A DNA stretch of 64,000 nt from Macrostomum lignano. Lineage: Eukaryota. The notes under the pieces are model-generated. The model had not been told where the DNA came from, did not search any database, and worked only from the letters and a program-made list of their open reading frames with translations. Made by a program: the position numbers and the translations under genes. Below, piece after piece: positions 4,179 to 50,956 of this stretch; position 1 is the first letter of the stretch; each line of letters starts with the position of its first letter. The DNA is taken from positions 79,178 to 143,177 of the forward strand of contig NIVC01000903.1 of the NCBI GenBank assembly GCA_002269645.1. Reading direction: 5' to 3'.

Positions 4179-5061
4179 TTGTTAAATCGAAGTATTTCAC
4201 TGCAATTTAGACTTTACAGGGCCAACCTTCAAAGCTCAGACAGTGTACATGCCTGATGATTAGAAAGTCAGGGCCGCTGTACACCCTGTGTGGGCGTGTG
4301 GGTGAGTGCTCCAGAGTCAGCTGAATGAGCAGAATTTCTGTCAGCGCTGGTTATGGAACGATGTCGCCGAAGGGTGCCCGCAGACCTCCTGAAAATACTA
4401 ATCTATATTATTTTAGGGTTAGGGTCTGGGGCTAAGGTGGGCAAGACTACCCCCAGCTGAACCTGTCCGCGTCATTCCACCCGAAATTTTCGTGGACTCC
4501 CTCGAATTTTTTTAGCCTATAATTGGCTAATTTTGCATCACGGATGCACTTTTAGCAAGTTGTTTACGTTTTTTCAACTGTCTTGCTTTGTATAAAATAG
4601 CTTACGCATTTTATACTTACTACTGAAAGTAGAGAAACTGTTCCTCTATTATAAAATCTTACGCATTTAGTGACAGGCAAAGAGCAGAGTGAGGCATCTG
4701 TGCCAGCAATCCTCTTCTTTGAATGACATTCAGCTCAATGCAGTCCAGCTGAAGCGTAAGATTTCATTATGGACTCTTCCGGTTGTAAAAATAGCCATCC
4801 CGTACAGCAACTAAGGCAACGTAGATGAGATAAAATCTTGGCACGAAGCCAAGTACAAAAATTGCCTACACGAGCAATTTTTATGGATGCAGAGTGAACT
4901 ATCTAAAATTCTTCATAGAGCAGATTCACGCGATCCGAAATACAAAGTTGCTAGGCTCTCAAGAGTCAGTTGAATCGCATTGACGCATTTTTAGAAACTT
5001 GGTTTTTTTTACAAGAACTAATCTGTCTGGCAAAACTGTTAGATGCACGAAAAGCTCTCAC

Positions 5062-5892
5062 CTGCTGCAGCTGGCTCAGGCTCGCCCGCAGCCGCTCGCA
5101 CAGCCCGTAGACGCACTCGATGCTGGAGCTGATCCGCCTGCCGCCGCTGCTGGCGCCGACGCTGCCGACTGAGCGGCGTCGCCGGAGCAGCCGCTCCTCT
5201 TGGCGACGGACGCGATCGATCTGCTCAGCCAGCAGCGTCAGGTCGCGCATTCTGGCCGCAATTTTGCGTCGCAGCTCCAGCAGCAGCAGGCGGCTCTCCA
5301 GCCTGCGTAGGCGCTGCAGCCGAGTCTGCAGTCTCGGCAGGACGGCCGAGTGCGCCAGGCAGGCGGTGCGCACCCCGCCGCAGTGGATGATGACTCCGTG
5401 GGCTGGCAGGCGGCCGAACTTCCCGGATGCTTCGCGCATCGCCGCGCGCAAGTCGTCCAGATCGACTCGGACGGCCGCTGCCGAGACCGGGCGCGGACTT
5501 GGCGACGGCGGTGGCGGCTGCTGCGGCTGGTCCGCGGCGCCGGGCAGCGAAGCCGGCGGACCCCCTGAGGCTGATGAAGCTGACGACGCAAATGTTGGAG
5601 CGACAACCGCCAGCAGTCGCGGCGAGTCGGTGGTCGTGGCGGCGTCCTGACGCGGCTGGTGCCGTCTGGCTACACCGCGCGGCGTCGACGGCAGTTCAAT
5701 CAGAACGGCTTCGCGCTCCTCCTTCGATTGTCGGCGGTCTTCAAGCTGGAGCTCCTCGTCGTCGGCGCAGTCATCAAAGCTCGACGCGCCAGCTGATTTG
5801 GACGCCGACAATCGACGGTTCCGTCTACGGCGAGGCGCCGGCAAAATGGCCGCCTTTTCATCGATTGGCAGGGCTCGGACTGCAGTTTCCAT
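5062..5892 (-). CDS. CCDC142: CCDC142-like protein, 5' coding exon (low-complexity N-terminus plus coiled coil)
   Basis: Part of ORF 4966..6012. First ATG at 5892; phase-0 donor CAG|GTGAGA at 5062/5061 joins in frame to the exon starting at 3473 (SLSQLQQ|VRLFTQQ). The true start is uncertain. Confidence 0.65.
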
Positions 5893-8800
5893 GACAACCG
5901 GTGGGTTGGAGGGCGCTGTAGTAGAGGGAGAACTCCGGTTGGCTGCAGCAGAAGTGCCGGAGCAGCAAACAAAGGATTGAGGATGGGGTGGTTCGTAATT
6001 AACAAGGTCCACTTAGCGACTGGTTTGAGGCAGGAAGACAGCCCAAATAGGGGAGGTCTCTTTTTTGTCGGCTCTGATTGCACTTACCCCTCCATCCCGC
6101 TCCGCTATGCGCACAATTATGTGACTGGCACAATGGAGTGAGAACAGAAAAGGAGGCCTGAGCAGCGAAAGTGGAACAATTATAATCCCCGTTCCCTTCA
6201 GCAGCGCTGCAGTCTCCGGAGCAGCAGGGGATTGTGGATAATTAGGAACCGGGAAAGAGACAAAACTGTACTCGGGGTATGAAAAATATGAACATGGGAA
6301 AAGTGCAAGTTGAGACTGAGGCATGCTCAAGCCTTGAAGTTGGGCAACAGTGATGACTGTACAATTGAGAAGACAAAGACATACTTTAATATGATCCTGC
6401 TTAGCACTACAAGCTATTAAAATTGTGCAAATCTTTAGGCAGCTTTGATTTGATACAGTTGCATAGCAATTTTATTTTGCTTATTAGAGGAATTTACTGA
6501 AACAAACAAAACATATCAGGTTATGTTAAGTCACGCGAATAATAAACTATCTAACTGTTCGAATTATTGCAGCAGTGGTATTTTTAACAAAAATTACTTG
6601 GTTTAAATTGCATTACACAAATTCTAATTTCTAAATCAACTCAAATAAATATATTTTTTAAGGCAACCAACTTATATTGTCATATAATACAGCTAAATTC
6701 CATGATAAAATTTTAACAAAAGAGCTGTAACCATATTGACATTAATTCATAATTTGCATATCATATCAGATTTGTATAGAAGAAAAATGGCAAAAAATGG
6801 AGAAAAATATAACCATCTGTATTTCACTCAACTAAGCAGCTTATTACTTCAAAAATTTCAATGAATTAATAAATTGACTTGTTGTTTCTGTCCTTATGAA
6901 TGACGAAAATATAGATACTAAAACAATTAGTTGATTATATGTTTAGTTATTCAATAATTCAAACATTCTAGGCATATCCAAGGGGCATTGAATATTTTTG
7001 AGAGGCTTGGGCACGAAAATTCAGGGGCCTGCCCGCCCTTGCCAGTGCAATATTTCTCTCAACAACAAACCGCCACCTCACCAAGAAATTCTGGGTGTGC
7101 CACTGTAGCTTGTAAATATTCTTATGCTAAATGGAACAATAAAAAAACAATTAAAAATCAACTAAAAACAACCAGAGACAAGTAAATACTACATTCTTGC
7201 ATACAACAATAAAACCTTTTCTTAAAGATTATATAGTAATTACACAGAAAAAGTTTCAGCTGACATAACCATTCACTATTTCACTTATAAAAAGCTATTC
7301 CACTTATTTTCAATAACAAAGAAATGACTAAAATCCCATGGGCAAGGTTTATCATTATCACTATCATCATTATTAGCTTTTGATACTAAAATGATCTGAA
7401 TATTATTGATACATACTCAAAGTGATTTATTTGACTGTGAAATACTGAAGATACACTAATGTCTTATAAATAAGTCTATCGTTTGACTTCATTCAGAAAT
7501 TGAATATCAGCATTTAGTAGCTCAGGTTGCACTCATTGAACTTCAGTACAAAATTATGAATCGTTTCGAATATTTAACTGCTTTGCTAGGCACTAACTTC
7601 ACTGAACTAAAATGTCTACAAACAAAAGAGAACTAACACTAAGAAAACGTTACATATATAAGATAAAAAATGATTACAGCCCAGATTAAATTAAAGAACT
7701 CATAAGTAACAAGACTAAACATTGTTTCTAGACTAAATAATATACTTACAACTGCTTTGTTAACAGAAATACTTTACTAAAATATACTTAATGTTTTTTA
7801 CTTAATAATAGCATAAATTTTACGAAACACTTTGTTAAGCTATATTAAGATTTTGTAAATAAATATCGCGTAAGTTTAACTTTGACGAAAAAAGTAAAAT
7901 TTATGTAATGTAATAGTAAATAAATACCAAACGCTAAAATTTACAATTTTACATTACATCAAATTTGACATATCATAAACGTCGAGATTGAGTTGAGATG
8001 AAATGTTTTATGTATTTATGTGATTGATTTTTCGTTGTTGTTAGTATTATTATATTTTTATTGATTTTTATTGAGTTTTTATTCTCTTTCGGAATTTAGA
8101 TAGCCCTACTACTCCTATACTGCTTCATTTATAGTATGTTTTTACTGCTATAATGCATTTACTGTGGGTGGTGGTTAATACAGGAGTTGATCATATAATT
8201 CATCATTGTAAGATAATATACATTGCCAACATAACAACTAAAAAGTAAAATGTTTAATTTAACAAATTTTAATTGGCCCTAATTTAAAAACATTATAAGA
8301 AGTTTGTGATAAAGTTTTTTATTAGGTACTAAACTTTCTATATGGCCTATTGGTTATTTTTATAAATATAGAAAACTTTTTATACAATAAATATTATTTG
8401 GGCCAAATATAGCTGGCTGGCCCTAAATATTAAAAAAACTACAATGAAATTTTCTTGCTAAGCAATTGTCAAATTAGGTCATATTTTAGATCTAACCAAG
8501 AAAATAAAATAATAGAACTTATTTAACTAATCCCAGGAGTATTAGTGTGACAATGTTTTGCTATAATATTTTTAGTTTCTATCTATTTTTAGTGTACTAA
8601 ATTGATTTTTTGTATTTAATATGGGGTTAGGAGGAAAGCCTTTTTACGTTTAGTTCTAGGAAAAATTCTGTCTAATATTTTATTTACTGTTCTATTATTT
8701 TGGTTACCACTTTTTTGCAGTAGGTTTAGAGGTTTTAGTAGGTCAGATTTTGATGCAGTTTTGAGTGCGGGAGTTTCATGTTTTTGGTGTAGGCTCTTCC

Positions 8801-11430: not shown

Positions 11431-11801
11431 GCTCTATAAGCATTCTATTTTATCTGGTCATCTAAGGCCCGAATTCATCTGGTCTTAGATGAGGTTGTAG
11501 CGTCCGTATTGAAATTTTAAGTTGATAGTTTTAATATATGTTATATGTAAATTTTATCAAGATTATACTAAAAACACACGTGTTTTAATTAGCACACTGA
11601 CAGCGCAGTCTCTCTCCGCGCATGCACACCCCAATACACCGCCTGTGCATTAGTGGCGCGATTTTATTCAACTGATAAACAAAATTTTAACCAGAGTAAG
11701 TCCAATGCCTAAAAGGGCAGCAGAAAAAGCAAGCCTAAAACTGAAATTTGCTGCTAATTTCTTTTGCTTGCAGCGCCCCTAGTAGCAACAGTGCGACCGG
11801 C

Positions 11802-12011
11802 ATGGAGGCCACAGCCGCCTCTGTTGACTCTGGTCGGCACAGCAAGATCGGCACCCTACGCCGAGCCTTCTGTCTACTGGTTCTGTTCGACCTGATTTTC
11901 ACCTGCATATTGTGGATATTCTACACCAAGTATCTTGGCTTAGACTTGGGCAAAGCTATTCGCGACCAGGTGTTGCACTATCAGTTTACATCGTCAGTCT
12001 TTGATTTAGTG
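11802..12011 (+). CDS. STARD3: STARD3/MLN64 coding exon 1 (MENTAL domain start)
   Basis: MEATAASVDSGRHSKIGTLRRAFCLLVLFDLIFTCILWI...QVLHYQFTSSVFDLV resembles the MENTAL motif SDVRRTFCLFVTFDLLF...YNFKTSFFDI. Donor GTG|GTAAGC at 12011/12012. Confidence 0.9.
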
Positions 12012-12181
12012 GTAAGCGCAACTATTTACAGTGTGCTGCTTAATAATGAATATTGGACTGATAAGTTCAAGCTGTAGGCTCAGCAGTGTCAACCATTTCT
12101 TTCCATGCAGAATTGCCCATCTTTGCCTTCTTCGACTGTCTGTCTGTCTGTTTTAGAAAAAGAATTCCCACTGTCGATTCC

Positions 12182-12547: not shown

Positions 12548-13735
12548 GAAAGCAGACAGCCAATCAGAGTGAGGCTCGAGGCTGCATGCCAGGCTAGAAA
12601 ACAGGCAGCCAATCAGTGTGAGGCTGCATGCCAGGCTAGAAAACAGGCAGCCAATCAGAGTGAAGCTGCATGCCAGACTATGCAACAGACAGCCAATCAG
12701 AGTGAGGCTGCATGCCAGGCCAGAAAACAGGCAGCCAGTCAGAGTGAGGCTGCATGCCAGGCTAAAAAACTAGCAGCCAATCAGAGTGAGACTGCATGCC
12801 AGGCCAGAAAACAGGCAGCCAGTCAGAGTGAGGCTGCATGCCAGGCTAGAAAACAGGCAGCCAATCAGAGTGAGACTGCATGCCAGGCCAAAAACAGGCA
12901 GCCAGTCAGAGTAAGGCTGCATGCCAGGCTAGAAAACAGGCAGCCAGTCAGAGTGAGGCTGCATGCTAGGCTAGAAAACAGGCAGCCCAGTCAGAGTGAG
13001 ACTGCATGCCATGCCAGAAAACATGCAGCCAGTCAGAGTAAGGCTGCATGCCAGGCTAAAAAACTAGCAGCCAATCAGAGTGAGACTGCATGCCAGGCCA
13101 GAAAACAGGCAGCCAGTCAGAGTGAGGCGGCATGCTAGGCTAGAAAACAGGCAGCCAGTCAGAGTGAGACTGCATGCCATGCCAGAAAACAGGCAGCCAG
13201 TCAGAGTGAGGCTGCATGCCAGGCTAAAAAACTAGCAGCCAATCAGAGTGAGACTGCGCCAGAAAACAGGCAGCCAGTCAGAGTGAGGCTGCATGCCAGG
13301 CTAAAAAACTAGCAGCCAATCAGAGTGAGACTGCATGCCAGGCCAGAAAACAGGCAGCCAGTCAGAGTGAGGCTGCATGCCAGGCTAGAAAACAGGCAGC
13401 CAGTCAGAGTGAGACTGCATGCCATGCCAGAAAACAGGCAGCCAGTCAGAGTGAGGCTGCATGCCAGGCTAAAAAACTAGCAGCCAATCAGAGTGAGACT
13501 GCGCCAGAAAACAGGCAGCCAGTCAGAGTGAGGCTGCATGCCAGGCTAAAAAACTAGCAGCCAATCAGAGTGAGACTGCATGCCAGGCCAGAAAACAGGC
13601 AGCCAGTCAGAGTGAGGCGGCATGCTAGGCTAGAAAACAGGCAGCCAGTCAGAGTGAGACTGCATGCCAAGCCAGAAAATTGGCAGCCAGTAAGAGTGAG
13701 GCTGCATGCCAGGCTAAAAAACTAGCAACCAATCG
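12548..13735. repeat. ~40-bp minisatellite (CAGCCAATCAGAGTGAGGCTGCATGCCAGGCTAGAAAACAGG)
   Basis: About 29 direct copies in STARD3 intron 1. Confidence 0.95.
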
Positions 13736-13856
13736 GACTAATTACTTGTAGCCAGGCAATTTGTCGAGGGGGGCCTCAGCGGCCTTGACCTTCTCAGGCT
13801 GTCAGGCAGGGATCAAACAGCACCGGTTTATTAATCTACAAAATTCCCATTTGCAG

Positions 13857-13934
13857 GGGGTGTCCCTCGTCAGATTCATCCTGTTAGAAGTTTTCTACGC
13901 CGCCCTTCGACTACAAAGTCCATGGGTTGTTGCC
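13857..13934 (+). CDS. STARD3: STARD3 coding exon 2
   Basis: ttgcag|GGG...GCC|GTAAGT; 78 nt, GVSLVRFILLEVFYAALRLQSPWVVA (MENTAL TM2-3). Confidence 0.9.
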
Positions 13935-14063
13935 GTAAGTTTCTTCATTTTCTTTATCGTTTATTTTGTTTCAAGCCCACTACTTACACTCACTCTGGTT
14001 AGTAGATTGTTTCGTATATTAAATTATTTGACTTCATTTACCGTTCCAAAAAAACAATTTCAG

Positions 14064-14117
14064 GTCACAACCGCATTCTCCACGGCCTTTATAATCGTTA
14101 AGATCATACTTTACGAT
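14064..14117 (+). CDS. STARD3: STARD3 coding exon 3
   Basis: tttcag|GTC...GAT|GTAGGT; 54 nt, VTTAFSTAFIIVKIILYD (cf. VTTLVSSAFLIVKVIL). Confidence 0.9.
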
Positions 14118-14207
14118 GTAGGTTTTCATGGTGCTTGAATGAATGTTTATATAAGAGTAAATAAAATTTAGCCTAAGCAGAATTGTGTAATTATCTCTCT
14201 GTTCCAG

Positions 14208-16579: not shown

Positions 16580-18755
16580 ATGACCAATGATCCACATGAC
16601 CAATGATCTACATGACCAATGATCCACAAGACAAATAAATTATTCATATGACCAAAGATCTTTATGACCAATGATCTTTATGACCAATGATCTACATGAC
16701 CAATGATTCACATGACCAATAAATGATCTACATGACCAATGATCCACATGACCTATGATCCACATGACCAATAAATGATCCTCATGACCAATGATCCTCA
16801 TAACCAATGATCCACATGACCTATGATCCACATGACCAATAAATGATCCTCATGACCAATGATCCTCATGACCAATGATCCACATGACCAATAAATGATC
16901 CACATGACCAATGATCCTCATGACCAATGATCTACATGACCAATGATCCACATGACCAATAAATGATTCACATGACCAATAAATAATTCACATGACCAAT
17001 AAATGATTTACATGACCAATAAATGATCCACATGACCAATGATCCTCATGACCAATGATCCACATGACCAATAAATGATCCACATGACCAATGATCCACA
17101 TGACCAATAAATGATCCACATGACCAATGATCCTTATGACCAATGATCTACATGACCAATGATCCACATGACCAATAAATAATTCACATGACCAATAAAT
17201 GATTCGCATGACCAATGATCCACATGACCAATGATCTACATGACCAATGATCCACATGACCAATGATTCACATGACCAATAAATGATCCACATGACCAAT
17301 GATCCTCATGACCAATGATCTACATGACCAATGATCCACATGACCAATAAATAATTCACATGACCAATAAATAATTCCCATGACCAATAAATGATTCACA
17401 TGACCAATGATCTACATGACCAATGATCCACATGACCAATGATCCACATGACCAATGATCCACGTGACCAATAAATGATTCACATGACCAATAAATAATT
17501 CACATGACCAATTATCTCGATGATCAATGATCTACATGACCATTAAATGATCCACATGACCAATGATCCTCATGACCAATGATCAACATGACCAATGATC
17601 CACATGACCAATGATCTGCATGACCAATGATCCACATGACCAATGATCTACATGACCAATGATCCACATGACCAATAAATGATTCACATGACCAATGATC
17701 TACATGACCAATGATCCACATGACCAATAAATGATCTACATGACCAATGATTCACATGACCAATGATCCACATGACCAATAAATGATTCACATGACCAAT
17801 GATCCACATGACCAATGATCTACATGACCAATGATCCACATGACCAATGATCCACATGACCAATAAATGATTCACATGACCAATGATCTACATGATCAAT
17901 GATCCACATGACCAATAAATGATTCACATGACCAATAAATGATTCACATGACCAATGGTCTACATGACCAATGATCTACATGACCAATGATCTACATGAC
18001 CAATGATACACATGACCAATGATCCACATGACCAATAAATGATTCACATGACCAATGATCTACATGACCAATGATCCACATGACCAATAAATGATTCACA
18101 TGACCAATGATCTACATGACCAATGATCTACATGACCAATGATCCACATGACCAATAAATGATTCACATGACCAATGATCTGCATGACCAATGTTCTACA
18201 TGACCAATGATCCACATGACCAATAAATGATTCACATGACCAATGATCTACATGACCAATGATCCACATGACCAATAAATGATTCACATGACCAATGATC
18301 TGCATGACCAATGATCTACATGACCAATGATCTACATGACCAATGATCTACATGACCAATGATCTACATGACCAATGATCTACTTGACCAATGATCCACA
18401 TGACCAATGATCTACGTGACCAATGATCCACATGACCAATGATCCACATGACCAATAAATGATCCACATGACCAATGATCCACATGACCAATAAATGATT
18501 CACATGACCAATGATCTACATGACTAATGATCCACATGACCAATAAATGATTCACATGACCAATGATCTGCATGACCAATGATCCACATGACCAATGATC
18601 CACATGACCCATAAATGATCTACATGACCAATGATTCCCATGACCAATGATCCACATGACCAATAAATGATTCACATGACCAATGATCCACATGACCAAT
18701 GATCCACATGACCAATAAATGATTCACATGACCAATGATCTACATGACCAATGAC
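16580..18755. repeat. 16/20-bp minisatellite (TGACCAATGATCCACA / TGACCAATAAATGATTCACA)
   Basis: More than 100 direct copies filling STARD3 intron 5, with degenerate copies grading into unique sequence on both sides. Confidence 0.95.
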
Positions 18756-18866
18756 CCCATAGCCGATAACCATATGACCGATGGCCTTATGACCGATCAC
18801 CCTCTGGCCAATTACGCCATGACCGATAGCACCATGACCGATGACCGCAATTATCACCCGCTCCAG

Positions 18867-19394
18867 CGGCACCGCCTGGCTCTCCGCGCCTCCCGCCTGG
18901 CTGACGAGTCCTGGCAGGCCTTGGAGGATGCTGGCTGGCGCTGCGTCCACGACCGGCCGCCCGTCCGGGTCCTGTCGCAGCGCTCGCGCCACCGCCCGTC
19001 TGGCAAAGCCTGGCGCCTGGAGACCCGGCTGCCGATCTCTGCCGATCGAGCTTTCCGCGAAATCTGGGACCGGGTGGACCGGCAGGCCGACTGGAATCCC
19101 ACAGTGCAGTTCTCCCGGCTGCTGCTCCGGCTGGACTCCGACACGGCCATAGTGCACAATGCCACCGCCGAGGCTGGCGGGGGCCTCATCAAGGCGCGCG
19201 ATTTTGTAACTCTGTGCGTCAGACGGTCCAGAGAGAACGGCATTCGTTACACTGGCGGCGTCTCCATAGAGACCGGGCTGATGCCCAAGATGGACGGCTA
19301 CACCCGGGGGGAGAATCATCCCGGCTGCATTGCCTGCATCCCGGATGGGCCCGGCGCCTGCCAGCTCGTGTGGATTGTTGACTCGGATATCAAG
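18867..19394 (+). CDS. STARD3: STARD3 coding exon 6 (most of the START domain)
   Basis: ctccag|CGG...AAG|GTGCGC; contains WNPTV, AGGGLIKARDFV, RGENHPGC and LVWIVDSDIK, hallmark StAR/STARD3 START motifs. Confidence 0.92.
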
Positions 19395-19429
19395 GTGCGC
19401 TGGTCTCTACAGAGTTGCTATGCGATTGG

Positions 19430-20055
19430 GGATTGGGATTTCTGTGAGATTATGAATTGGGATTTCTATGGGATTGGAGAATGGGATTTCTATGGTATTG
19501 GGGAATGGGATTTCTATGAAAATTGGAGAATGGGATTTCTATGAAATTTGGGAATGGGATTTCTATTGGATTGGGGAAAGGAATTTTTATGGGATTGTGG
19601 AATGGGATTTATATGTTATTGGGGAGTGGGATTTTTATGAGATTGAAGAATGGGATTTCTATGGTATTGGGGAATGGGATTTCTATGGTATTGGGGAATG
19701 GGATTTCTATGAAATTTGGGAATGGGATTTCTATGTAATTTGGGAATGGGATTTCTATTGGATTAGGGAAAGTAATTTCTATGGGATTGTGGAATGGAAT
19801 TTCTATGGTATTGGGGAATGGGATTTCTATGGTATTGGGGAATGGGATTTCTATGAAATTTGGGAATGGGATTTCTATGTAATTTGGGAATGGGATTTCT
19901 ATTGGATTAGGGAAAGTAATTTCTATGGGATTGTGGAATGGAATTTCTACGGGATTGGGGATTGGGATTTCTATGGTATTGGGGAATGGGATTTCTATGG
20001 TATTGGGGAATGGGATTTCTATGGTATTTAGGTTTCTATGGGATTGGGGATTGAA
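19430..20055. repeat. 24-bp minisatellite (GGGATTTCTATGGTATTGGGGAAT)
   Basis: About 25 copies in STARD3 intron 6. Confidence 0.9.
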
Positions 20056-21278: not shown

Positions 21279-21590
21279 TCAGAGTGAGACTGCATGCAGC
21301 AGGCAGCCAATCAGAGTGAGGCTGCATTCCGGACTAGAAAACAGGCAGCCAATCAGAGTGATGCTGCATGCCAGACTATGCAACAGACAGCCAATCAGAG
21401 TGAGGCTGCATGCCAGACTATGCAACAGGCAGCTAATCAGAGTGAGGCTGCATGCCAGACTAGAAAGCTGGCAGCGAATCAAAGTGAGCTGCATGCCAGA
21501 CTATGCAACAGACAGCCAATCAGAGTGAGGCTGCATGCCAGACTATGCAACAGACAGCCAATCAGAGTGAGGTTGTACATGTATACCAGA
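21279..21590. repeat. Second array of the ~40-bp CAGCCAATCAGAGTGAGGCTGCATGCC family
   Basis: About 8 copies in the same orientation as 12548-13735. Confidence 0.9.
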
Positions 21591-21635
21591 CTAGGAGATC
21601 AAACCAAAAGTGAAGCGCTTGGTAAGAACGCAGTT

Positions 21636-24600
21636 ACTACGTAATGCGCAGATAAGTGTTGATTTTTAGGCATATTTGACGCAAAAAACGCAAATTATAC
21701 TACTATCTGAAAATGAAGTAAGTAGTATATGAAAACGATATCCTAAGCGTGATGTGGCAATATGTAGTCGTAATAATCCATGTGCTCATATTAATTCCAT
21801 GTACATTAATCCCTATCTATCTCAAATTGTACATTAATTCCATGTACATTAATCCATATCTCAAATTGTCTATCCCCAATTCTATATGTACACTCACATT
21901 AATCTACAGTGTCATCCCCAGCGCGCGCGCGCACCAAAATTACAACTCGAAACCCTACTATATGTACAGTGTACAATCTCATCTACTACTACCAAATGAG
22001 TCAACTAATTGTGTAGCCTACAACGTAAATGTATATTTCCAATGTACATTTCTCAGACATTTGAATAATACGGGTCGGAGTCTATATGTACATCGATAGC
22101 CTCTATACTCGTATCCGCTACATACCCCAAAAATTAGGTATGTACATTTTCACCCTCGGAGAATGTAGGTTTGAATATGCTGATAATTTATTCGAAATCA
22201 CTTATAAAATACACATACTTTCATATAGAGGCGGGCCTGTACAAACTCTCGCCAAGCGATGGGGTGGAGGTTGCGTCATCCAAGCCTCTCCCAAGTCTGC
22301 CCCCCCCCCAAATACAAGACTGTGTTGAAGCAGTGCTTTATATTTCTATTGACAGTGAGTATGATACAAGACGCTTCGTCGCGCTTTAATTACAGTAAAC
22401 CATCCCCTCGAAGCTCCTATACTGAATGCTGAATCACCCTTTAACTCGGACCATAGTCAAATTCAACCCTGTTCGAAAACAGCCACCCCTCCGATGTTCA
22501 CCAGACACAGCGCAGACCCCATAACAAATCGAGCTAAATTTTAACACTCGCCCCTGTTCTCTCTGTCCCCCCTTCTAAATGCCAAGGAATTTCGACCCTC
22601 TCTCCATTTTCAGTGTACAGACAGATCTTTCCACAGCACAGACCCTATATTAAACTTCAAAACCCCTCTCTTCTCCGATTACGTCATCCATGCCGCCCCA
22701 GTTAGCAAGAAACCAACTTTTAATGCACACATCAACCCCCGCGAGCAAATCCGAGTCCACCAACCTCTACCTGCATTGACAAACCCCAGCTGCATTTGTA
22801 AATGTACACAGCCTATGAATCAGTGTCTCCACCGCATGCAATTCTGATTTACTTGATTCTAAACTTTGTAAATTGTATAAGTCACCCTTGCGTTATACTA
22901 GAAGTAGTGAAGTCCACATATTTAAATACGTGAGGCTATTCAATTCTGCCTCTCCGCCTCCCCTACCTTCTCACTTCAAGCTTTCAGACTTGGTCTTTGA
23001 GACGGTCGGTTTAATCTGTTAGAAGCAGGAATGAATCATGCACTGACCTCTCCATACAAAGTAAAGTTGGAATTTCAGACAAGAAATTTGGTTATTTTAA
23101 AAGCTAAATGACTAGAAATGCACATTTTTTTCATTAAAATGCAGCTTTTTACAGTTTTTTTACGATTTTAACCTTAAAATGCAGACTTTGTTGATCAAAA
23201 TCAGTAGTTTCATCACTAGAAACCATACTTTCAGCAGCTCCTCGTAATTTGTCCAAATGTCGCTTTCAACTTGACCTTAGACTGCTTTTAAGCAGGAATG
23301 AACCCCCCACAAACATCCACAAGCCAGCCCAAAATCATCCAAAGACATGGCTATTGAAGCCTAAATTGCTAGAAATGCGCATTTTTTTCATAAGAAAATA
23401 CAAATTTTCACAGTTTTTATGCATTTTTACGTTAAAATGCAGACTTTATTGATCAAAATCAGTAGTTTCATCACTAGAAACCATACTTTCAGCAACTAAT
23501 TTGTCCAAATATCGCTTTCAATTTGACCTTAGACAGCTTTTAAGCAGGAATGAACCCCCCACAAACATCCACAAGCCACCCCAGAATCAACCAAAGACAT
23601 GGCTATTGAAGCTTAAATTGCTAGAAATGAGCATTTTTTCATAAAACACAAATTTTAACAGTTTTTACGCATTTTTTTCGTTAAAATGCAGACTTTATTG
23701 ATCAAAATCAGTAATTCATCACTAAAAACCACAATTTTAACACAAAATTATCACAAATGCTACTTCTGGAACTCTGAGACAGCTTTGAGCAGGAATTATA
23801 ATCGCACACGGATTACCCGAGCCAGTCCAATATTCCACTGAAGCCAGGGTTTTTTAAAGCTGAATTGTTAGAATTGCTCATTCTTTCGTTTAATAAATGA
23901 CAATTTTCACAGTTTTATTATTTTCTAACGTTAAAATGCGAAATGTATTGGTCAAACTTAGTAGTTTCATCCCAAAAGCCATAATTTCAACCGCTAATTT
24001 GTCCAAATGCTGATTTCAAAGTTGGCAAGAGACAGCTTTCGAGCAGGAATGAGTTACACACTGATCTCCATATGCACACCCCGGCCCAAGTTGGAATTCC
24101 ACCCAAGACATTTTCATTGAAAGCTAAATTACTAGAAATTGCACATTTTCGTTTTAAAAAGGTCAATTTTCACAGTTTTTACTCTTTTTAACGTTAAAAT
24201 GCTGACTTTATTGAACAAAATTAATCACTTCATCAGCAGAAACCATAATTTTTACAACTTAATGCTGTTTCATCATTCAAATGTATGTATTTGGTACGTG
24301 TAATACCCCTCATGAAGTCAGGGAAGGGATTATTCTTGAATATTGGGTTAAAACGTACAGTTTGCTATAAACCTAGCTATAATAATTTTAACATATACAG
24401 TCGGCGAAGCGGCCCGTTGATTTCGATTGACATTTAAACTGTCCCTCCCAGACCTCTCTCTCTCTCCTTCTGCACCCACCGAGAAAAGTGACTCATGCGG
24501 CAATCAGCTGGACAGGTTTTATTACTGAATTGGCAAAACAGCCAACACCCAATGGTCATATTAGACTCGTCTTCACAGCACAGACCCATGTAGAACAGAA

Positions 24601-27600
24601 CCACTCGTCCCTGTCTCTCTGACCTTACCATTTCTAACTGTCAAGGAATTCCGACCCTCCCTCTCCAATTTCAGTGTACAAACAGATATTTTCACAGCAC
24701 AGACTCATATATTGAGCCTCCTCCAACCAAAACCCTATCTTGATTACGTCATCCACCTCCCCCATAGAAGCAGTTAGCAAGAAACAAAATTTTTCGATGC
24801 ACATATGAACACTGTGGACCATGCAAAATCGCACATCTACGGGTCGATTTTGATTGACAATTTAATACCTTTTGTTGATGCTGCTGTGTACAGTAGTCTT
24901 ATTTCCGAAGCTCCTAGCAGTCATCTTTTAGATGTGGTGAATCAGTGTTGTTTTTGCCAACTTTACATCTTGATTCATCCTCCAAATTCTTCAACTCTGA
25001 CCATATTCAATAATTTAACCCATGCAAGTAGATTTGCCAATTCGCCAAATTAGCCAATACGAATGGGGCCAGAGGACCCACCCAAATCGAGCCCTTGTCT
25101 CTCTCAGGCCTCTCTCTCCTACACATACCCCAGAAAAGTGACTCATGAGGCAATCAGTTTAACAGGTTCAGTATACTGAATTGGCAAAACAGCAAACACC
25201 CAATGGTCAATGGACTCGTCTTCGCAGCACAGACCATTTTGAATAAAGCCAAAACACACATACACCCCTATTCTCTGACCAAACCTTTCCATTTCTAGTT
25301 GTCAACGAAATTCGACCGGCCTCTCTCTCAATCCCAAAGTACATTTTGACGAAGCAAGCAGATCTTTTCACAGCACGGACCCAGCCTCCCCCAACCAAAG
25401 CCCTATCTCTGATTACGTCATCTATACATCCCCATAGAAGCAGTTAGCAAGAAAAAAATTTCGATGCGCATATATGAACAATGCGAACCAAGCAAATCCG
25501 CGCGTCTACCAAAGCCAACCCTACCCTGCGTGCTGTAATTGCATTTGTCAATGTACACACCCTATGAATCAGTGTCTCCTTCTTTGGAACACACGAAGGC
25601 ATTAGTCAGAAAGTTTGGATGCAATTAAAAACTCTCTCGATGCTTTGCGTATAAACGAGTAATCGATTGAATCAATTGTACACTTGACACATTTAATTAC
25701 GTGCTGCCATGCAACGGAAAGACAGGATAATGGGGTGGGTGGTCACGCAGCCTCATTCTCTCTTTCCTACTGATTTTTCATTATCTATCAATCTCAGCTC
25801 TTTCCGGGGCAACTCGCGCATTTGTGCATACTTCCTCATCAGATTTACCACATGTTCATTTACATGTGATGTACATATGCAAGCGGCAGCCGATTTAAAC
25901 CTGAGAAATGGTTGAAGCACTCCCCCGACTATGACTAAATGCACGTACGTTCAGTCAAATACAGGAAAATTTGACACCCGTAGTATGAAGATGAAATCTT
26001 CACGAAAGCTTCACATGTTTATCTTTCTCTGGGGAAATGACGATAGTTTCTCAATAAAAATCTGTCATAGGCCCAATATAGCAGTTTAAATATTTTCACG
26101 AAAATGTCGCATTATTCAAAGAACTGATTTTTGCAAACTCTACTGTCAGTAGGAAGATGAGTTTTCATAGAGACATTTTGTAAAACATAGACTAAACTTT
26201 CAAATCATTCGTTTACACGACGCACAGTCACGGTCCGGCCACCCTCCGCCCGCGCCGCTGCCTCTCAATGAATGTAAAATAGGAGTGTTAGTTCATGTAT
26301 TAATGCTCCTTGACCTGCAAAAATTATACGGTTGCTAGGCAGTGTCGTAAAACAGAACATGCGTTTTTCTGTAAAGTAATAATAACCCCACCATTAATAT
26401 AGACAGTTGGTCGTGTAAACGAATGATTTGAAAGTTTAGTCTATGTTTTACAAAATGTCTCTATGAAAACTCATCTTCCTACTGACAGTAGAGTTTGCAA
26501 AAATCAGTTCTTTGAATAATGCGACATTTTCGTGAAAATATTTAAACTGCTATATTGGGCCTATGACAGATTTTTATTGAGAAACTATCGTCATTTCCCC
26601 AGAGAAAGATAAACATGTGAAGCTTTCGTGAAGATTTCATCTTCATACTACGGGTGTCAAATTTTCCTGTATTTGACTGAACGTACGTGCATTTAGTCAT
26701 AGTCGGGGGAGTGCTTCAACCATTTCTCAGGTTTAAATCGGCTGCCGCTTGCATATGTACATCACATGTAAATGAACATGTGGTAAATCTGATGAGGAAG
26801 TATGCACAAATGCGCGAGTTGCCCCGGAAAGAGCTGAGATTGATAGATAATGAAAAATCAGTAGGAAAGAGAGAATGAGGCTGCGTGACCACCCACCCCA
26901 TTATCCTGTCTTTCCGTTGCATGGCAGCACGTAATTAAATGTGTCAAGTGTACAATTGATTCAATCGATTACTCGTTTATACGCAAAGCATCGAGAGAGT
27001 TTTTAATTGCATCCAAACTTTCTGACTAATGCCTTCGTGTGTTCCAAAGAAGGAGACACTGATTCATAGGGTGTGTACATTGACAAATGCAATTACAGCA
27101 CGCAGGGTAGGGTTGGCTTTGGTAGACGCGCGGATTTGCTTGGTTCGCATTGTTCATATATGCGCATCGAAATTTTTTTCTTGCTAACTGCTTCTATGGG
27201 GATGTATAGATGACGTAATCAGAGATAGGGCTTTGGTTGGGGGAGGCTGGGTCCGTGCTGTGAAAAGATCTGCTTGCTTCGTCAAAATGTACTTTGGGAT
27301 TGAGAGAGAGGCCGGTCGAATTTCGTTGACAACTAGAAATGGAAAGGTTTGGTCAGAGAATAGGGGTGTATGTGTGTTTTGGCTTTATTCAAAATGGTCT
27401 GTGCTGCGAAGACGAGTCCATTGACCATTGGGTGTTTGCTGTTTTGCCAATTCAGTATACTGAACCTGTTAAACTGATTGCCTCATGAGTCACTTTTCTG
27501 GGGTATGTGTAGGAGAGAGAGGCCTGAGAGAGACAAGGGCTCGATTTGGGTGGGTCCTCTGGCCCCATTCGTATTGGCTAATTTGGCGAATTGGCAAATC

Positions 27601-30600
27601 TACTTGCATGGGTTAAATTATTGAATATGGTCAGAGTTGAAGAATTTGGAGGATGAATCAAGATGTAAAGTTGGCAAAAACAACACTGATTCACCACATC
27701 TAAAAGATGACTGCTAGGAGCTTCGGAAATAAGACTACTGTACACAGCAGCATCAACAAAAGGTATTAAATTGTCAATCAAAATCGACCCGTAGATGTGC
27801 GATTTTGCATGGTCCACAGTGTTCATATGTGCATCGAAAAATTTTGTTTCTTGCTAACTGCTTCTATGGGGGAGGTGGATGACGTAATCAAGATAGGGTT
27901 TTGGTTGGAGGAGGCTCAATATATGAGTCTGTGCTGTGAAAATATCTGTTTGTACACTGAAATTGGAGAGGGAGGGTCGGAATTCCTTGACAGTTAGAAA
28001 TGGTAAGGTCAGAGAGACAGGGACGAGTGGTTCTGTTCTACATGGGTCTGTGCTGTGAAGACGAGTCTAATATGACCATTGGGTGTTGGCTGTTTTGCCA
28101 ATTCAGTAATAAAACCTGTCCAGCTGATTGCCGCATGAGTCACTTTTCTCGGTGGGTGCAGAAGGAGAGAGAGAGAGGTCTGGGAGGGACAGTTTAAATG
28201 TCAATCGAAATCAACGGGCCGCTTCGCCGACTGTATATGTTAAAATTATTATAGCTAGGTTTATAGCAAACTGTACGTTTTAACCCAATATTCAAGAATA
28301 ATCCCTTCCCTGACTTCATGAGGGGTATTACACGTACCAAATACATACATTTGAATGATGAAACAGCATTAAGTTGTAAAAATTATGGTTTCTGCTGATG
28401 AAGTGATTAATTTTGTTCAATAAAGTCAGCATTTTAACGTTAAAAAGAGTAAAAACTGTGAAAATTGACCTTTTTAAAACGAAAATGTGCAATTTCTAGT
28501 AATTTAGCTTTCAATGAAAATGTCTTGGGTGGAATTCCAACTTGGGCCGGGGTGTGCATATGGAGATCAGTGTGTAACTCATTCCTGCTCGAAAGCTGTC
28601 TCTTGCCAACTTTGAAATCAGCATTTGGACAAATTAGCGGTTGAAATTATGGCTTTTGGGATGAAACTACTAAGTTTGACCAATACATTTCGCATTTTAA
28701 CGTTAGAAAATAATAAAACTGTGAAAATTGTCATTTATTAAACGAAAGAATGAGCAATTCTAACAATTCAGCTTTAAAAAACCCTGGCTTCAGTGGAATA
28801 TTGGACTGGCTCGGGTAATCCGTGTGCGATTATAATTCCTGCTCAAAGCTGTCTCAGAGTTCCAGAAGTAGCATTTGTGATAATTTTGTGTTAAAATTGT
28901 GGTTTTTAGTGATGAATTACTGATTTTGATCAATAAAGTCTGCATTTTAACGAAAAAAATGCGTAAAAACTGTTAAAATTTGTGTTTTATGAAAAAATGC
29001 TCATTTCTAGCAATTTAAGCTTCAATAGCCATGTCTTTGGTTGATTCTGGGGAGGCTTGTGGATGTTTGTGGGGGGTTCATTCCTGCTTAAAAGCTGTCT
29101 AAGGTCAAATTGAAAGCGATATTTGGACAAATTAGTTGCTGAAAGTATGGTTTCTAGTGATGAAACTACTGATTTTGATCAATAAAGTCTGCATTTTAAC
29201 GTAAAAATGCATAAAAACTGTGAAAATTTGTATTTTCTTATGAAAAAAATGCGCATTTCTAGCAATTTAGGCTTCAATAGCCATGTCTTTGGATGATTTT
29301 GGGCTGGCTTGTGGATGTTTGTGGGGGGTTCATTCCTGCTTAAAAGCAGTCTAAGGTCAAGTTGAAAGCGACATTTGGACAAATTACGAGGAGCTGCTGA
29401 AAGTATGGTTTCTAGTGATGAAACTACTGATTTTGATCAACAAAGTCTGCATTTTAAGGTTAAAATCGTAAAAAAACTGTAAAAAGCTGCATTTTAATGA
29501 AAAAAATGTGCATTTCTAGTCATTTAGCTTTTAAAATAACCAAATTTCTTGTCTGAAATTCCAACTTTACTTTGTATGGAGAGGTCAGTGCATGATTCAT
29601 TCCTGCTTCTAACAGATTAAACCGACCGTCTCAAAGACCAAGTCTGAAAGCTTGAAGTGAGAAGGTAGGGGAGGCGGAGAGGCAGAATTGAATAGCCTCA
29701 CGTATTTAAATATGTGGACTTCACTACTTCTAGTATAACGCAAGGGTGACTTATACAATTTACAAAGTTTAGAATCAAGTAAATCAGAATTGCATGCGGT
29801 GGAGACACTGATTCATAGGCTGTGTACATTTACAAATGCAGCTGGGGTTTGTCAATGCAGGTAGAGGTTGGTGGACTCGGATTTGCTCGCGGGGTTGATG
29901 TGTGCATTAAAAGTTGGTTTCTTGCTAACTGGGGCGGCATGGATGACGTAATCGGAGAAGAGAGGGGTTTTGAAGTTTAATATAGGGTCTGTGCTGTGGA
30001 AAGATCTGTCTGTACACTGAAAATGGAGAGAGGGTCGAAATTCCTTGGCATTTAGAAGGGGGGACAGAGAGAACAGGGGCGAGTGTTAAAATTTAGCTCG
30101 ATTTGTTATGGGGTCTGCGCTGTGTCTGGTGAACATCGGAGGGGTGGCTGTTTTCGAACAGGGTTGAATTTGACTATGGTCCGAGTTAAAGGGTGATTCA
30201 GCATTCAGTATAGGAGCTTCGAGGGGATGGTTTACTGTAATTAAAGCGCGACGAAGCGTCTTGTATCATACTCACTGTCAATAGAAATATAAAGCACTGC
30301 TTCAACACAGTCTTGTATTTGGGGGGGGGGGCAGACTTGGGAGAGGCTTGGATGACGCAACCTCCACCCCATCGCTTGGCGAGAGTTTGTACAGGCCCGC
30401 CTCTATATGAAAGTATGTGTATTTTATAAGTGATTTCGAATAAATTATCAGCATATTCAAACCTACATTCTCCGAGGGTGAAAATGTACATACCTAATTT
30501 TTGGGGTATGTAGCGGATACGAGTATAGAGGCTATCGATGTACATATAGACTCCGACCCGTATTATTCAAATGTCTGAGAAATGTACATTGGAAATATAC

Positions 30601-30995
30601 ATTTACGTTGTAGGCTACACAATTAGTTGACTCATTTGGTAGTAGTAGATGAGATTGTACACTGTACATATAGTAGGGTTTCGAGTTGTAATTTTGGTGC
30701 GCGCGCGCGCTGGGGATGACACTGTAGATTAATGTGAGTGTACATATAGAATTGGGGATAGACAATTTGAGATATGGATTAATGTACATGGAATTAATGT
30801 ACAATTTGAGATAGATAGGGATTAATGTACATGGAATTAATATGAGCACATGGATTATTACGACTACATATTGCCACATCACGCTTAGGATATCGTTTTC
30901 ATATACTACTTACTTCATTTTCAGATAGTAGTATAATTTGCGTTTTTTGCGTCAAATCTGCCTAAAAATCAACACTTATCTGCGCATTACGTAGT
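21636..30995. mobile_element. 9,360-bp fold-back (palindromic) non-autonomous element: 4,586-bp inverted arms, 188-bp spacer, 6-bp flanking duplication
   Basis: Left arm 21636-26221 is the reverse complement of 26410-30995; mirrored ORF pairs sum to 52631 (e.g. 21749/30882, 23249/29382, 25753/26878). Termini ACTACGTAATGCGC...GCGCATTACGTAGT. GCAGTT flanks both ends (21630-21635, 30996-31001). No ORF longer than ~116 aa. Confidence 0.85.
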
Positions 30996-32574
30996 GCAGT
31001 TGCATAAAGAATCTGCCAATTTAGTGTTGAGCTGAAACTAATTAACGAGGTCAGTGTCGGAGAGAAAGACAAAAACGAGAAATCAAAATCCCAAAAGACC
31101 AACTAGAGGTCACGGCTTCTGGATGCTAAGTTCCTGCCATGACTCCAACGCTGAGCACTGTGATCCCCAAGTGGGAAACTGCTTGAAATGGCTGTGCTAA
31201 AAATAGACACAGCACTGGATTTTGGCTCAAATTAAGTGTGTAAAACCGCGCAGTTCAGCTGGTCGTGGCGCAGTAATTGGAGACAAATGAAGGGATCGAG
31301 GTCCGCGGGGAGTCCGGGGGGGGGCAGCGATGCAGCTTACAAGCCATGCGCCCGAGCGAGCCTTTGATACTGAGGCAACTCTCTGGGGAATCTGATTGAA
31401 TTTAAGACAGCTGGCTGACTGCGGGCTGCATGGGGAAGCTGCATGCAAAGGGAGAAGAGCTGCAGAGCGCGTGAAGACTTGGGCATGTGAGCAGGGCGTT
31501 GATCCTAATCTTATATCTGCGTATTCTCACTGGGGGAGATGCTTGCAAATTTAAGGAGTAAACAAACACTTGACCGTTTGATAATTTATTCTATTTGGAT
31601 TAAGAATGCGCATCTCTGGGCCTTTGGATACTGAAATAACGATTGTTAAGCGTGTGCAAAGCTTGGTGCAATCAAGCTAAGCCATACTAGCTCTCTATCA
31701 TTGAGCGTGTGCAAAGCTTGGCGTGCAATCAGGCTTAGCCATTACTAGCTCCTCTATAACTGAGCGTGTGCAAAGCTGGAGTGCCATATGTTTAATGTGT
31801 GTCATCAGGTTTCATCCTGCCCAGCATCACTAGCCCCAGAAGAAACAGTCAACCAACTGAAGGTCAGCACTTAGCCAGCAGCTACCAGGTCGAATGAACA
31901 GCTGCTGAATTGGCAACATTCGGGCAGTGCATGGGGGGTCTATACGCCAGGCAAGAAGTGCCATTTTTGCTTCATTACCTTCTCTTGGGGGGGGGGGCAG
32001 CTTTCGCAGCCGAGCTTATCAGCACCAGCTGCAGTCGTTAAGGCCGCACTGCCGCAGCCCCCCTAGGGACGGCGCTCAGCAATACTTGTCCCAGTAAATC
32101 AGGATCCGGGGCCACGCCCCAATAATTCCATTTGCCGGGTTGGAGTTTTACAACCCTAGTAAATGCCATTTTTGTCGCTCCCACGCGTGTTATGCTTCAT
32201 TAATAGCTAAGCACATTTTTGCCCAATAACAGTGGTGAGGCCTGGACTGCGGGGACTGCAGGACTCTCCTATGTTGAGGCTTGCACAGGCTTTCGATTCT
32301 CTCGGACTCGGCGAGATTAATTATTGCCCTTTAGCCCTGTAATCATAAATCTGCTCTCGGGGGTCTGGAGTGCGAGAGGGAGATGGGAGAGCGGCCGGGT
32401 CTTTGGCGCTCAGTTCCTCAATTCCGGTAGGTGCCGCAAGCGATGCCAGCTGTGCACCCTAAAAGTGCAAAAAGGGAACAGAGCGCCCGACTTAGTGTCA
32501 GGTGTATCTATGAATATTTGGCTGCCAAAGAGTGCACATTCGGTTTCAGGGGTAGCCAAGTTGCGGTTGATAGG

Positions 32575-38303: not shown

Positions 38304-39305
<1,002 letters not shown>

Positions 39306-41066: not shown

Positions 41067-42164
<1,098 letters not shown>

Positions 42165-50138: not shown

Positions 50139-50496
50139 GGCTTTCTACTAGGCACTCCTGTGCACTTGCCTGTCAATAACCGCTATTCTGGCAGTGAGAA
50201 CACAGTTGAACATGGAAACTCTGCTCACGAGTCTGTTTGTCCTTCTTCATCTCAATAATTCTCGATTTTTTGCCCGAAATTCCTATTCAATTTTCTCAAT
50301 AAAAACTCGCGGATGTTGCCACAATCTTCCTGTTGATCCGGCTGCTCATTGAAATTCCAAGGTCTGCAGCGCCCCGAGCTTCCTGCCAACCCCTGATTGG
50401 CAGCCCTGTGGCTTCCTCTGGGGCCATTGAGAGCGAATTCCCGGGAAAAATCCTCTCACATTCACCTCGGCATTAGTTGAAGAGCCCTGCACACTG

Positions 50497-50956
<460 letters not shown>

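Follow-up and report, generated by a model that had tools for sequence, protein, structure and literature searches.

The palindrome described here lies in the flatworm Macrostomum lignano, within a window of 64,000 nucleotides of contig NIVC01000903.1, the whole stretch of DNA that was analysed. This notoriously repeat-rich genome has been published as a Pilon-polished Canu assembly of PacBio CLR reads (PMC5730564). The insertion site is intergenic, with a STARD3-like gene 2.1 kb upstream (the site lies downstream of the gene), and about one third of the surrounding DNA is minisatellite. The window also holds suspiciously perfect arrays, for example (ATCT)250, which measures exactly 1,000 bp. 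The palindrome itself is near-perfect, totals about 9.4 kb and is bounded by a target-site duplication (TSD); its features are as follows.

21630-21635 (no strand): left TSD copy, GCAGTT, read directly; immediately before the left arm
21636-26221 (+): left arm, terminus 5'-ACTACGTAATGCGCAGATAAG; non-coding; two substitutions and two one-base homopolymer indels relative to the right arm
21800-22243 (no strand): subterminal cluster of 10 TGTACA hexamers; mirror copy at 30388-30831
22545-22830 (+): dispersed 290-480-bp module, copy 1 (partial, ~290 bp); mirror at 29801-30086
23104-24259 (+): five tandem repeats of ~252 bp (period 252), older copies 71-76% identical; mirror at 28372-29527
24440-24840: dispersed 290-480-bp module, copy 2; mirror at 27791-28191
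25096-25579: dispersed 290-480-bp module, copy 3; mirror at 27052-27535
25580-26221 (+): inner unique domain of the left arm, without a match elsewhere in the arm or window
26222-26409 (no strand): centre (middle domain), asymmetric, 188 bp, single copy; ends in CAGTTG at 26404-26409
26410-30995 (-): right arm, reverse complement of the left arm
30996-31001 (no strand): right TSD copy, GCAGTT, read directly; immediately after the right arm

The two inverted arms, each of 4,586 bp, and the spacer of 188 bp that a first-pass annotation had described are reproduced by a repeat search and a global alignment of the arms. The repeat search gives a gap of 172 nt instead of 188, because the 8 bp adjoining each arm on the centre side match at five of eight positions when aligned. 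Arm sequence makes up 98% of the palindromic element. The arms differ by two substitutions and two compensating 1-nt indels, both in poly-C runs (identity ~99.9%); the indels show that the consensus is not error-free, and if both substitutions in 4,586 bp are real the arms have diverged by ~0.04%. The centre has no symmetry of its own, and its alignment to the terminus as a TIR partner scores no better than shuffled sequences. The whole can be described as two inverted copies of one end, 4,774 and 4,586 bp long, with 188 bp of surplus on one side, and the centre is read here as the surplus length of the longer of these two fused copies. Microsatellites aside, a search of the window finds no other long inverted repeat, and no similarity between the arm and the remainder of the window was found.

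Read inward from the terminus, the layout comprises a flanking domain, a tandem-repeat domain, an inner domain and the short middle domain. The hexamer TGTACA occurs 17 times per arm (3.7 per kb) against 11 times in the remaining 54.6 kb (0.2 per kb), an 18-fold enrichment. The clustered copies, 10 within ~450 bp, often take the form (A)TGTACA(T) and stand beside ATTAAT. Such clustering resembles that of the subterminal binding sites of TIR transposons, and we infer that these hexamers, as part of the flanking domain, may serve as repeats bound by a transposase. The three copies of the 290-480-bp module in each arm are 74-95% identical to each other.

The palindrome shows no sign of coding. 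Its longest open reading frame spans 116 aa, and all six frames, read through arm and centre, contain 73-102 stops each in ~1,590 codons. No Pfam family matches these six full frames at E<=0.1, and a search of 5.8 billion proteins finds no relative for any of the 29 longest stop-free pieces. Rfam and tRNA searches of the palindrome, centre included, likewise return no match. Together, these results uphold the earlier observation that the element lacks coding capacity. Exact-protein look-ups give no match, and no transposase partner lies within the window.

The junctions are sharply defined. With a slash marking the palindrome boundary, the left one reads ...GAAC GCAGTT / ACTACGTAATG... and the right one ...CATTACGTAGT / GCAGTT GCATAAAG..., so that the hexamer GCAGTT forms a direct repeat, exact at six of six positions and flush against both ends. 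An exact flanking duplication of this hexamer and unique flanks had both been proposed before, and both are borne out: the left and right flanks differ from each other, while both arms stop at one and the same terminal base. The TSD is 6 bp long and no longer, as the match is lost in the alignment on extension to 7 or 8 bp. GCAGTT occurs 47 times in the window on the two strands together (~3.7e-4 per position), and the chance of a match at exactly that place is therefore ~1 in 2,700. The termini read 5'-ACTACG...CGTAGT-3', and the terminal 27-mer is found in the window only at the two palindrome ends. A search of metagenome and viral collections with the terminus gives no match, and the termini match no nameable superfamily. 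A third TSD-like word, CAGTTG, is present at the junction of the centre and the right arm, and CAGTTG occurs again 1 nt past the right arm.

A real structure without coding capacity, framed by an exact 6-bp duplication, points to the insertion of a mobile element through one integration event. The earlier proposal of a mobile element placed in a single event is supported in this respect, and a non-autonomous element of foldback type fits best. We favour, with somewhat more confidence than doubt, a real, young, non-coding insertion of a derivative of a class II (TIR, cut-and-paste type) transposon, and more specifically a foldback unit that belongs to a non-autonomous family and was already complete when it integrated. 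In this scheme, two inverted copies of one element end, 4,774 and 4,586 bp long, would have been fused head to head, and the left and right termini would be identical because both arms are copies of one element end. A transposase or integrase supplied in trans would bind both identical termini, probably via the subterminal TGTACA repeats. The termini would then be joined to a target cut with a 6-bp stagger, the repair of which would yield the GCAGTT duplication. The foldback reading draws on the exact TSD at identical terminal bases, the differing flanks, a domain layout like that of Tetris (PMC4079207) and the 18-fold enrichment of a hexamer that clusters subterminally, as well as on a palindrome that is the sole one of its kind in the window, with arms unrelated to the neighbouring DNA and no coding or RNA signal. 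Against it stand the third TSD-like word, which is not expected from simple one-step integration, the lack of a transposase partner in the window, termini that match no nameable superfamily, arms far longer than any Tetris TIR and the homopolymer indels in the consensus. From the TSD it follows that two identical ends were integrated jointly, but not that the 9.4-kb palindrome predated integration or forms a repeated family. A palindrome this long and this perfect is expected to be unstable.

The strongest competing explanation, which we consider possible but rather unlikely, is a one-off by-product of aberrant transposition of the maize Ac type. Here, two sister chromatids would each carry the parent element, and one and the same end of it would be taken from both and integrated at a single target. 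Replication into both copies would then stall at unequal distances of 4,586 and 4,774 bp, and the broken ends would be joined. Snapdragon is also among the plants with a sister-chromatid aberrant transposition mechanism. In maize, sister-chromatid transposition of Ac followed by re-replication gives composite insertions of ~6.4-8.4 kb (bioRxiv 10.1101/2020.01.07.897926; also PMC4270019), which place the Ac 5' end twice, in inverted copies of unequal length, between perfect 8-bp TSDs (bioRxiv 10.1101/2020.01.07.897926). The palindrome has the same topology (TSD, arm, a one-sided extra 188 bp, inverted arm, TSD), with inverted same-end copies of unequal length (4,774 and 4,586 bp), an internal fusion and a perfect TSD. 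The composite model explains the near-identity of the arms, because both would have been copied from one template in one cell cycle, and it explains an asymmetric centre without useful microhomology (5/8 matches). However, it needs a parent of which one end is non-coding over at least 4.77 kb, an uncommon design for an autonomous element, and neither an internal second terminus nor a donor-flank signature is present in the arm. Moreover, the foldback-like domain layout is accounted for equally by a family, and the sister-chromatid mechanism has so far been documented in plants such as maize and, as stated in PMC12312487, for Drosophila P elements.

The TSD dates a first insertion only, and this leaves room for expansion in situ, a quite improbable course in which an element with short or moderate TIRs inserted and made the TSD, and repair of a later break inside it copied one arm inward until the interior had been replaced and the inverted repeat had grown to 4.6 kb. 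Growth of inverted repeats through copy-repair is known from plastid and poxvirus genomes, and CAGTTG, the TSD-like word where the right arm meets the centre, hints that more than one event may have occurred at the site. Yet this account requires two events where one suffices, its candidate inner repeats are imperfect and unequal in length (5/6 and 6/7), and at its right end the centre does not resemble the terminus as a TIR would.

An assembly artefact, arising from a chimeric or fold-back long read or from a mis-threaded repeat graph, is unlikely, and we give it very little weight. The kind of assembly (PacBio CLR, Canu and Pilon on a repeat-rich genome; PMC5730564), the differences between the arms at two homopolymers and the perfect (ATCT)250 array in the window would all suit such an origin. 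A fold-back read would, however, mirror the flank too, and the flanks here differ; because these differing flanks each abut the same terminal base and the same hexamer, both junctions must be real DNA. The centre is, in addition, a complex one-sided sequence of 188 bp and not a join of zero length or adapter size.

The first-pass annotation had also raised the possibility that a large linear element, Polinton/Maverick-like, had given rise to a snap-back or defective derivative; the integrase of such an element would then have placed it. Palindromic defective genomes are known among protein-primed linear replicons, which counts in favour of a snap-back. A 6-bp TSD, as found at the palindrome, is a hallmark of Mavericks (PMC8097293), with a range of 5-8 bp given elsewhere (PMC10748475). 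Polintons and the palindrome thus share a 6-bp TSD and terminal inverted repeats, but the core genes are absent: in the 4.77 kb inward from the terminus, no signal of pPolB, integrase, protease, ATPase or capsid appears in any frame. Maverick TIRs measure 46-1,447 bp and have genes adjacent to them (PMC8097293), and Polinton TIRs reach ~1.5 kb at most, with genes directly after (PMC10748475; PMC8097293), whereas the palindrome arms, at 4,586 bp, are three times as long as the longest reported Maverick TIR. The ACTACG terminus also differs from the (AG)3 and (AGT)2 end motifs of vertebrate Mavericks (PMC8097293), a motif that is weak evidence alone and may not apply to flatworm Polintons. The subterminal TGTACA repeats and the 252-bp tandem repeats are instead typical of foldback TIR transposons. 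With no trace of core genes, arms that are too long and a different end motif, descent from a Polinton has a very slim chance of being correct. The CMC group (CACTA/Mirage/Chapaev) has TSDs of 2-4 bp and CAC-type termini. A CMC-type fold-back, likewise suggested earlier, is not supported, as the 6-bp duplication and the ACTACG terminus both speak against it.

An origin outside transposition, as host DNA inverted and duplicated through replication template switching, GCAGTT being a chance match or microhomology at the junction, is barely credible: CAGTTG at the centre/right-arm junction and 1 nt past the right arm would suit a polymerase that returned to a site just copied, but the priming 3' end matches at 5/8 bases with mismatches at the priming end, the second switch must land exactly on the base where the left arm begins, and the subterminal TGTACA cluster and foldback layout are left unexplained.

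A transcript running through the palindrome would plausibly form a hairpin of ~4.6 kb that could feed small-RNA pathways. Mu killer and other natural hairpin loci silence transposons and consist of an inverted duplication of one DNA-transposon end. By analogy, and as a speculative suggestion of rather low probability, the palindrome might be a natural "killer" locus, a same-end composite insertion whose transcribed 4.6-kb hairpin gives rise to small RNAs that target an unclassified family of DNA transposons, still active and with 6-bp TSDs; in an animal it would then correspond to Mu killer and to the Ac composite insertions of maize. The likeness to Mu killer lies in an inverted one-end duplication able to form a long hairpin RNA. 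In maize, composite insertions do yield dsRNA and siRNAs that silence the family (bioRxiv 10.1101/2020.01.07.897926; eLife PMC4270019).

M. lignano is a model for regeneration and stem cells, and its DNA transposons are little described in the literature consulted. Should reads and other copies confirm it, the palindrome would rank among the longest foldback insertions of an animal genome that are near-perfect and have a clean TSD, and it would offer a handle on an unclassified M. lignano family of DNA transposons with 6-bp TSDs. It would be a likely hotspot of instability and mis-assembly and a possible source of hairpin-derived small RNAs. It would also provide a test case for same-end aberrant transposition, experimentally shown in maize, as a shaper of animal genomes. 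The palindrome adds an example and leaves the current understanding of transposons unchanged.

Among known systems, the maize Ac/Ds composites likewise combine unequal inverted same-end copies with an arbitrary internal fusion and a perfect TSD, at 6-8 kb in total. Their TSD is, however, 8 bp long (hAT), and their arms are recognisable as pieces of a known autonomous element, whereas the palindrome arms are non-coding throughout. The foldback elements FB, Galileo and Tetris are likewise flanked by TSDs, are presumed to be mobilised in trans and are rarely found as copies of intact structure. Galileo belongs to the P superfamily and has a 7-bp TSD. All three Drosophila elements, Tetris especially, also have non-coding, modular long TIRs around a short middle domain (PMC4079207), and the palindrome shows the same structure, with very long TIRs built of modules and tandem repeats, a short middle domain and a flanking TSD. 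In Tetris, a flanking domain, ~220-bp tandem repeats, an inner domain and a middle domain follow one another without an ORF; its longest TIR is 1,735 bp and its TSD is 8-10 bp, and foldback elements have been suggested to be members of Mutator (PMC4079207). Tandem-repeat blocks in FB, Galileo and Tetris have units of ~220-250 bp, close to the ~252 bp of the palindrome. The likeness is one of structural layout: the host is a flatworm, the termini are unrelated to those of FB, Galileo or Tetris, and the TSD is 6 bp, against 8-10 bp in Tetris and 7 bp in Galileo. Membership of the Mutator/Foldback or P (Galileo) superfamily, considered as a candidate, is not supported by this TSD length. At 4,586 bp, the arms are ~2.6 times as long as the longest Tetris TIR, and the palindrome is most likely an unusually long-armed example of a known foldback kind and not a new kind.

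The palindrome, a near-perfect inverted structure at 21636-30995, emerges from a repeat search as three collinear blocks, which global alignment merges into a single pair of arms around a short centre:

Parts of the palindrome (arms from global alignment)
21636-26221, left arm, 4,586 bp
26222-26409, centre, 188 bp
26410-30995, right arm, inverted, 4,586 bp

In this alignment the arms differ by only 2 substitutions and 2 one-base indels, and both indels lie in poly-C runs, each compensating the other so that the register is restored. The repeat search gives a gap of 172 nt because the 8 bp adjoining each arm match at only 5/8 positions. Immediately outside both arms stands the hexamer GCAGTT in direct orientation (21630-21635 and 30996-31001), a target-site duplication (TSD) of exactly 6 bp, as extension to a 7th or 8th base brings a mismatch. 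Since the two strands together contain 47 copies of GCAGTT across the window, the chance of finding it at the single required position is ~4e-4. The two flanks are otherwise unrelated sequences. The first-pass annotation had described a palindrome with unique flanks and an exact 6-bp duplication, and alignment and flank reading bear this out. No similarity to the arms was found in the remaining 54.6 kb of the window, and the terminal 27-mer, with 3 mismatches allowed, is confined to the two palindrome ends there. Other long inverted repeats are absent from the window, apart from ATCT/GATA microsatellites.

Each arm has four parts, which follow one another inward from the terminus (the outer arm end) and lead into the 188-bp centre, beyond which all four recur in mirror image:

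Parts of the arm (left-arm positions)
Outermost ~0.9 kb, (a) flanking domain, starting ACTACGTAATGCGCAG, with 38% G+C over the outermost 700 bp
22545-22830 (partial), 24440-24840 and 25096-25579, (b) three copies of a module of up to ~480 bp, 74-95% identity
23104-24259, (c) five tandem repeats of ~252 bp
25580-26221, (d) inner unique domain

The flanking domain contains ten TGTACA hexamers within 21800-22243, many of them as ATGTACAT adjoining ATTAAT. Each arm carries 17 copies of the hexamer (3.7 per kb); elsewhere in the window its density is 0.2 per kb. Short palindromic motifs packed this densely near a terminus look like the transposase-binding regions of many TIR transposons, and the hexamers may be candidate binding sites. 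No internal copy of the terminus, inverted or direct, was found within the arm, so the idea that an arm is by itself an entire element with a second terminus, or that it carries donor flank, was rejected. Arm plus centre as a complete TIR element ending at the right edge of the centre was likewise discarded, since that edge aligned with the terminus no better than shuffled sequence did.

The claim of the first-pass annotation that the palindrome has no coding capacity proved correct in every test applied. The longest open reading frame (ORF) touching an arm has 116 aa, and the six frames of arm plus centre each contain 73-102 stops per ~1,590 codons, the density of random sequence. Pfam searches of these six whole frames, with stops marked X, gave no match at E<=0.1, and those of the ten longest ORFs gave only noise. 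A search of 5.8 billion predicted proteins with the 29 longest stop-free arm pieces gave no relative, which closes the ORF-based route to other copies and leads to rejection of coding capacity; exact-protein look-ups of an arm ORF, and of the GPCR and START exon described below, also returned no record. Rfam (E<=0.1) and ARAGORN tRNA scans found no match. Counted from one terminus, the non-coding stretch amounts to 4.77 kb.

The insertion lies between two genes and is thus intergenic:

Neighbouring genes
11748-12077 and 13761-14138, plus strand, MENTAL-domain exons of a STARD3/MLN64-like gene
18735-19544, plus strand, START-domain exon of the same gene
54376-56781, plus strand, intronless muscarinic-type GPCR ORF, 801 aa

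The left end of the palindrome lies 2.1 kb past the last coding exon of the STARD3-like gene, from which read-through transcription into it is conceivable, and the palindrome is located 23 kb upstream of the GPCR ORF. The latter is identical to the UniProt M. lignano model wherever the two align, which identifies the window as M. lignano DNA, and overall identity is 87% because of gaps and frame errors in the older model; the public M. lignano GPCR models, with internal gaps and frame-shifted stretches, look wrong rather than the ORF at 54376-56781. The introns of the STARD3-like gene are mostly filled with minisatellites (42-bp, 16-bp and 16/52/68-bp units). The 42-bp family occurs twice, in an intron of this gene (12578-13722) and just left of the insertion (21294-21572), where its last degenerate unit reaches to ~15 bp from the left TSD. 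Similarity to the unit is weak for the left flank (13/500 shuffles as good) and marginal for the right (38/500). It is suggestive only, in that the flanks may be two halves of one degenerate 42-bp unit that was once contiguous.

Tandem repeats (TRF score at least 100) occupy ~22 of the window's 64 kb and form over 30 distinct arrays; the G+C content of 2-kb bins ranges from 32% to 67%. This load agrees with what has been published for the genome, namely 15% simple and tandem repeats and 21% LTR elements (PMC5730564). Among the very long microsatellites, (ATCT)250 at 38304-39303 is free of imperfections and measures exactly 1,000 bp, a round length that consensus building or polishing may have produced; (TAGT)274 (41069-42164) and (GATA)115 (50496-50956) are nearly perfect. 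The left end of the window is G+C-rich and carries long ORFs on the minus strand. One of these (259-2493) is an in-frame reading of a CTGGGA hexamer array, and Pfam gave no match for the other two (2526-3473, 315 aa; 4966-6012, 348 aa).

Identical termini that meet the same 6-bp word at the exact terminal base on both sides are the signature of concerted two-end integration, in which two identical ends would have been integrated together into a staggered cut. The pre-insertion site would then have read ...GAAC GCAGTT GCATAAAG..., with a single GCAGTT. Together with the subterminal cluster and the foldback layout of the arms, this signature points to a non-autonomous foldback-type class II element, most likely integrated once and mobilised in trans. 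A real insertion of foldback type is somewhat more likely than not, and within this reading membership of a family is slightly favoured. The near identity of the arms indicates that the element is young or has been homogenised by intra-element conversion. Its terminus showed no verifiable fit among the groups with which a 6-bp TSD is compatible (Polinton, IS3EU, Dada and some hAT groups), and the 21-nt terminus had no match in JGI metagenome contigs or IMG/VR. Palindromes, foldback elements and Polintons go unmentioned for this species in the M. lignano repeat literature that was searched.

The strongest alternative, though a rather unlikely one, is a one-off composite insertion through same-end transposition between sister chromatids. 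In maize Ac, two sister chromatids each contribute the same end to one target, re-entering replication forks abort at unequal distances, and the ends are then joined; the product is a composite insertion of 6.4-8.4 kb with two inverted, unequal 5' ends and a perfect TSD, and such insertions yield dsRNA and siRNAs (bioRxiv 10.1101/2020.01.07.897926; PMC4270019). The palindrome can be described in the same terms, as two copies of the same end, 4,774 bp and 4,586 bp long, whose junction has no useful microhomology: unequal lengths and such a join are exactly what is described for Ac. If this origin were true, the palindrome would be a single-copy by-product of a parent with a non-coding end of at least 4.77 kb. 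It is also possible that an ordinary insertion came first and that the inverted repeat then grew in place, but this requires more events. A history in two steps, first arm plus centre and later an inverted arm at the right-hand TSD, would yield three copies of the target word. A third TSD-like word does exist: CAGTTG, offset from the TSD by a single base, lies directly against the right arm's inner end (26404-26409) and recurs one base past the outer end of that arm (30997-31002), where it overlaps the GCAGTT duplication. However, the repeats required by two steps are imperfect and unequal (5/6 and 6/7), in contrast to the perfect 6/6 outer pair. With 25 occurrences of CAGTTG in the window on both strands, coincidence has a probability of 1e-3 to 1e-2 when offsets are allowed for, and the word is either a rare coincidence or what a second event left behind at this site.

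An assembly artefact is very improbable. The published M. lignano assembly was built from PacBio CLR reads with Canu and Pilon (PMC5730564), and the indels in homopolymers, like the abundance of repeats in the assembly, leave this reading a small probability. A fold-back or missed-adapter read, however, mirrors the flank too and leaves no one-sided 188-bp centre, whereas different host DNA at the two junctions means that both are present in real molecules. Template-switch duplication of host DNA fails because the priming end is mismatched and a second switch must hit the exact terminal base.

With regard to known systems, the foldback-type element upholds part of the first-pass interpretation, namely a mobile-element-derived, non-autonomous sequence of foldback type, and not its proposed affinities. 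CMC is ruled out by TSD length and termini. LTR or retroviral integration, which produces TSDs of 4-6 bp and element ends TG...CA, was entertained for its TSD size and rejected because the termini are not TG...CA. For a Polinton/Maverick snap-back the 6-bp TSD fits, but there is no core-gene signal within 4.77 kb of the terminus, where a young end copy of that length should contain kilobases of recognisable polymerase or integrase sequence. Mavericks have TIRs of 46-1,447 bp with adjoining genes, and end motifs (AG)3 or (AGT)2 (PMC8097293; PMC10748475). The foldback elements Tetris, FB and Galileo consist of a flanking domain, tandem repeats, an inner domain and a short middle, with no ORF (PMC4079207), and the palindrome shares both this domain layout and the lack of an ORF. 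It would represent a known kind of element, distinguished by the length and perfection of its arms.
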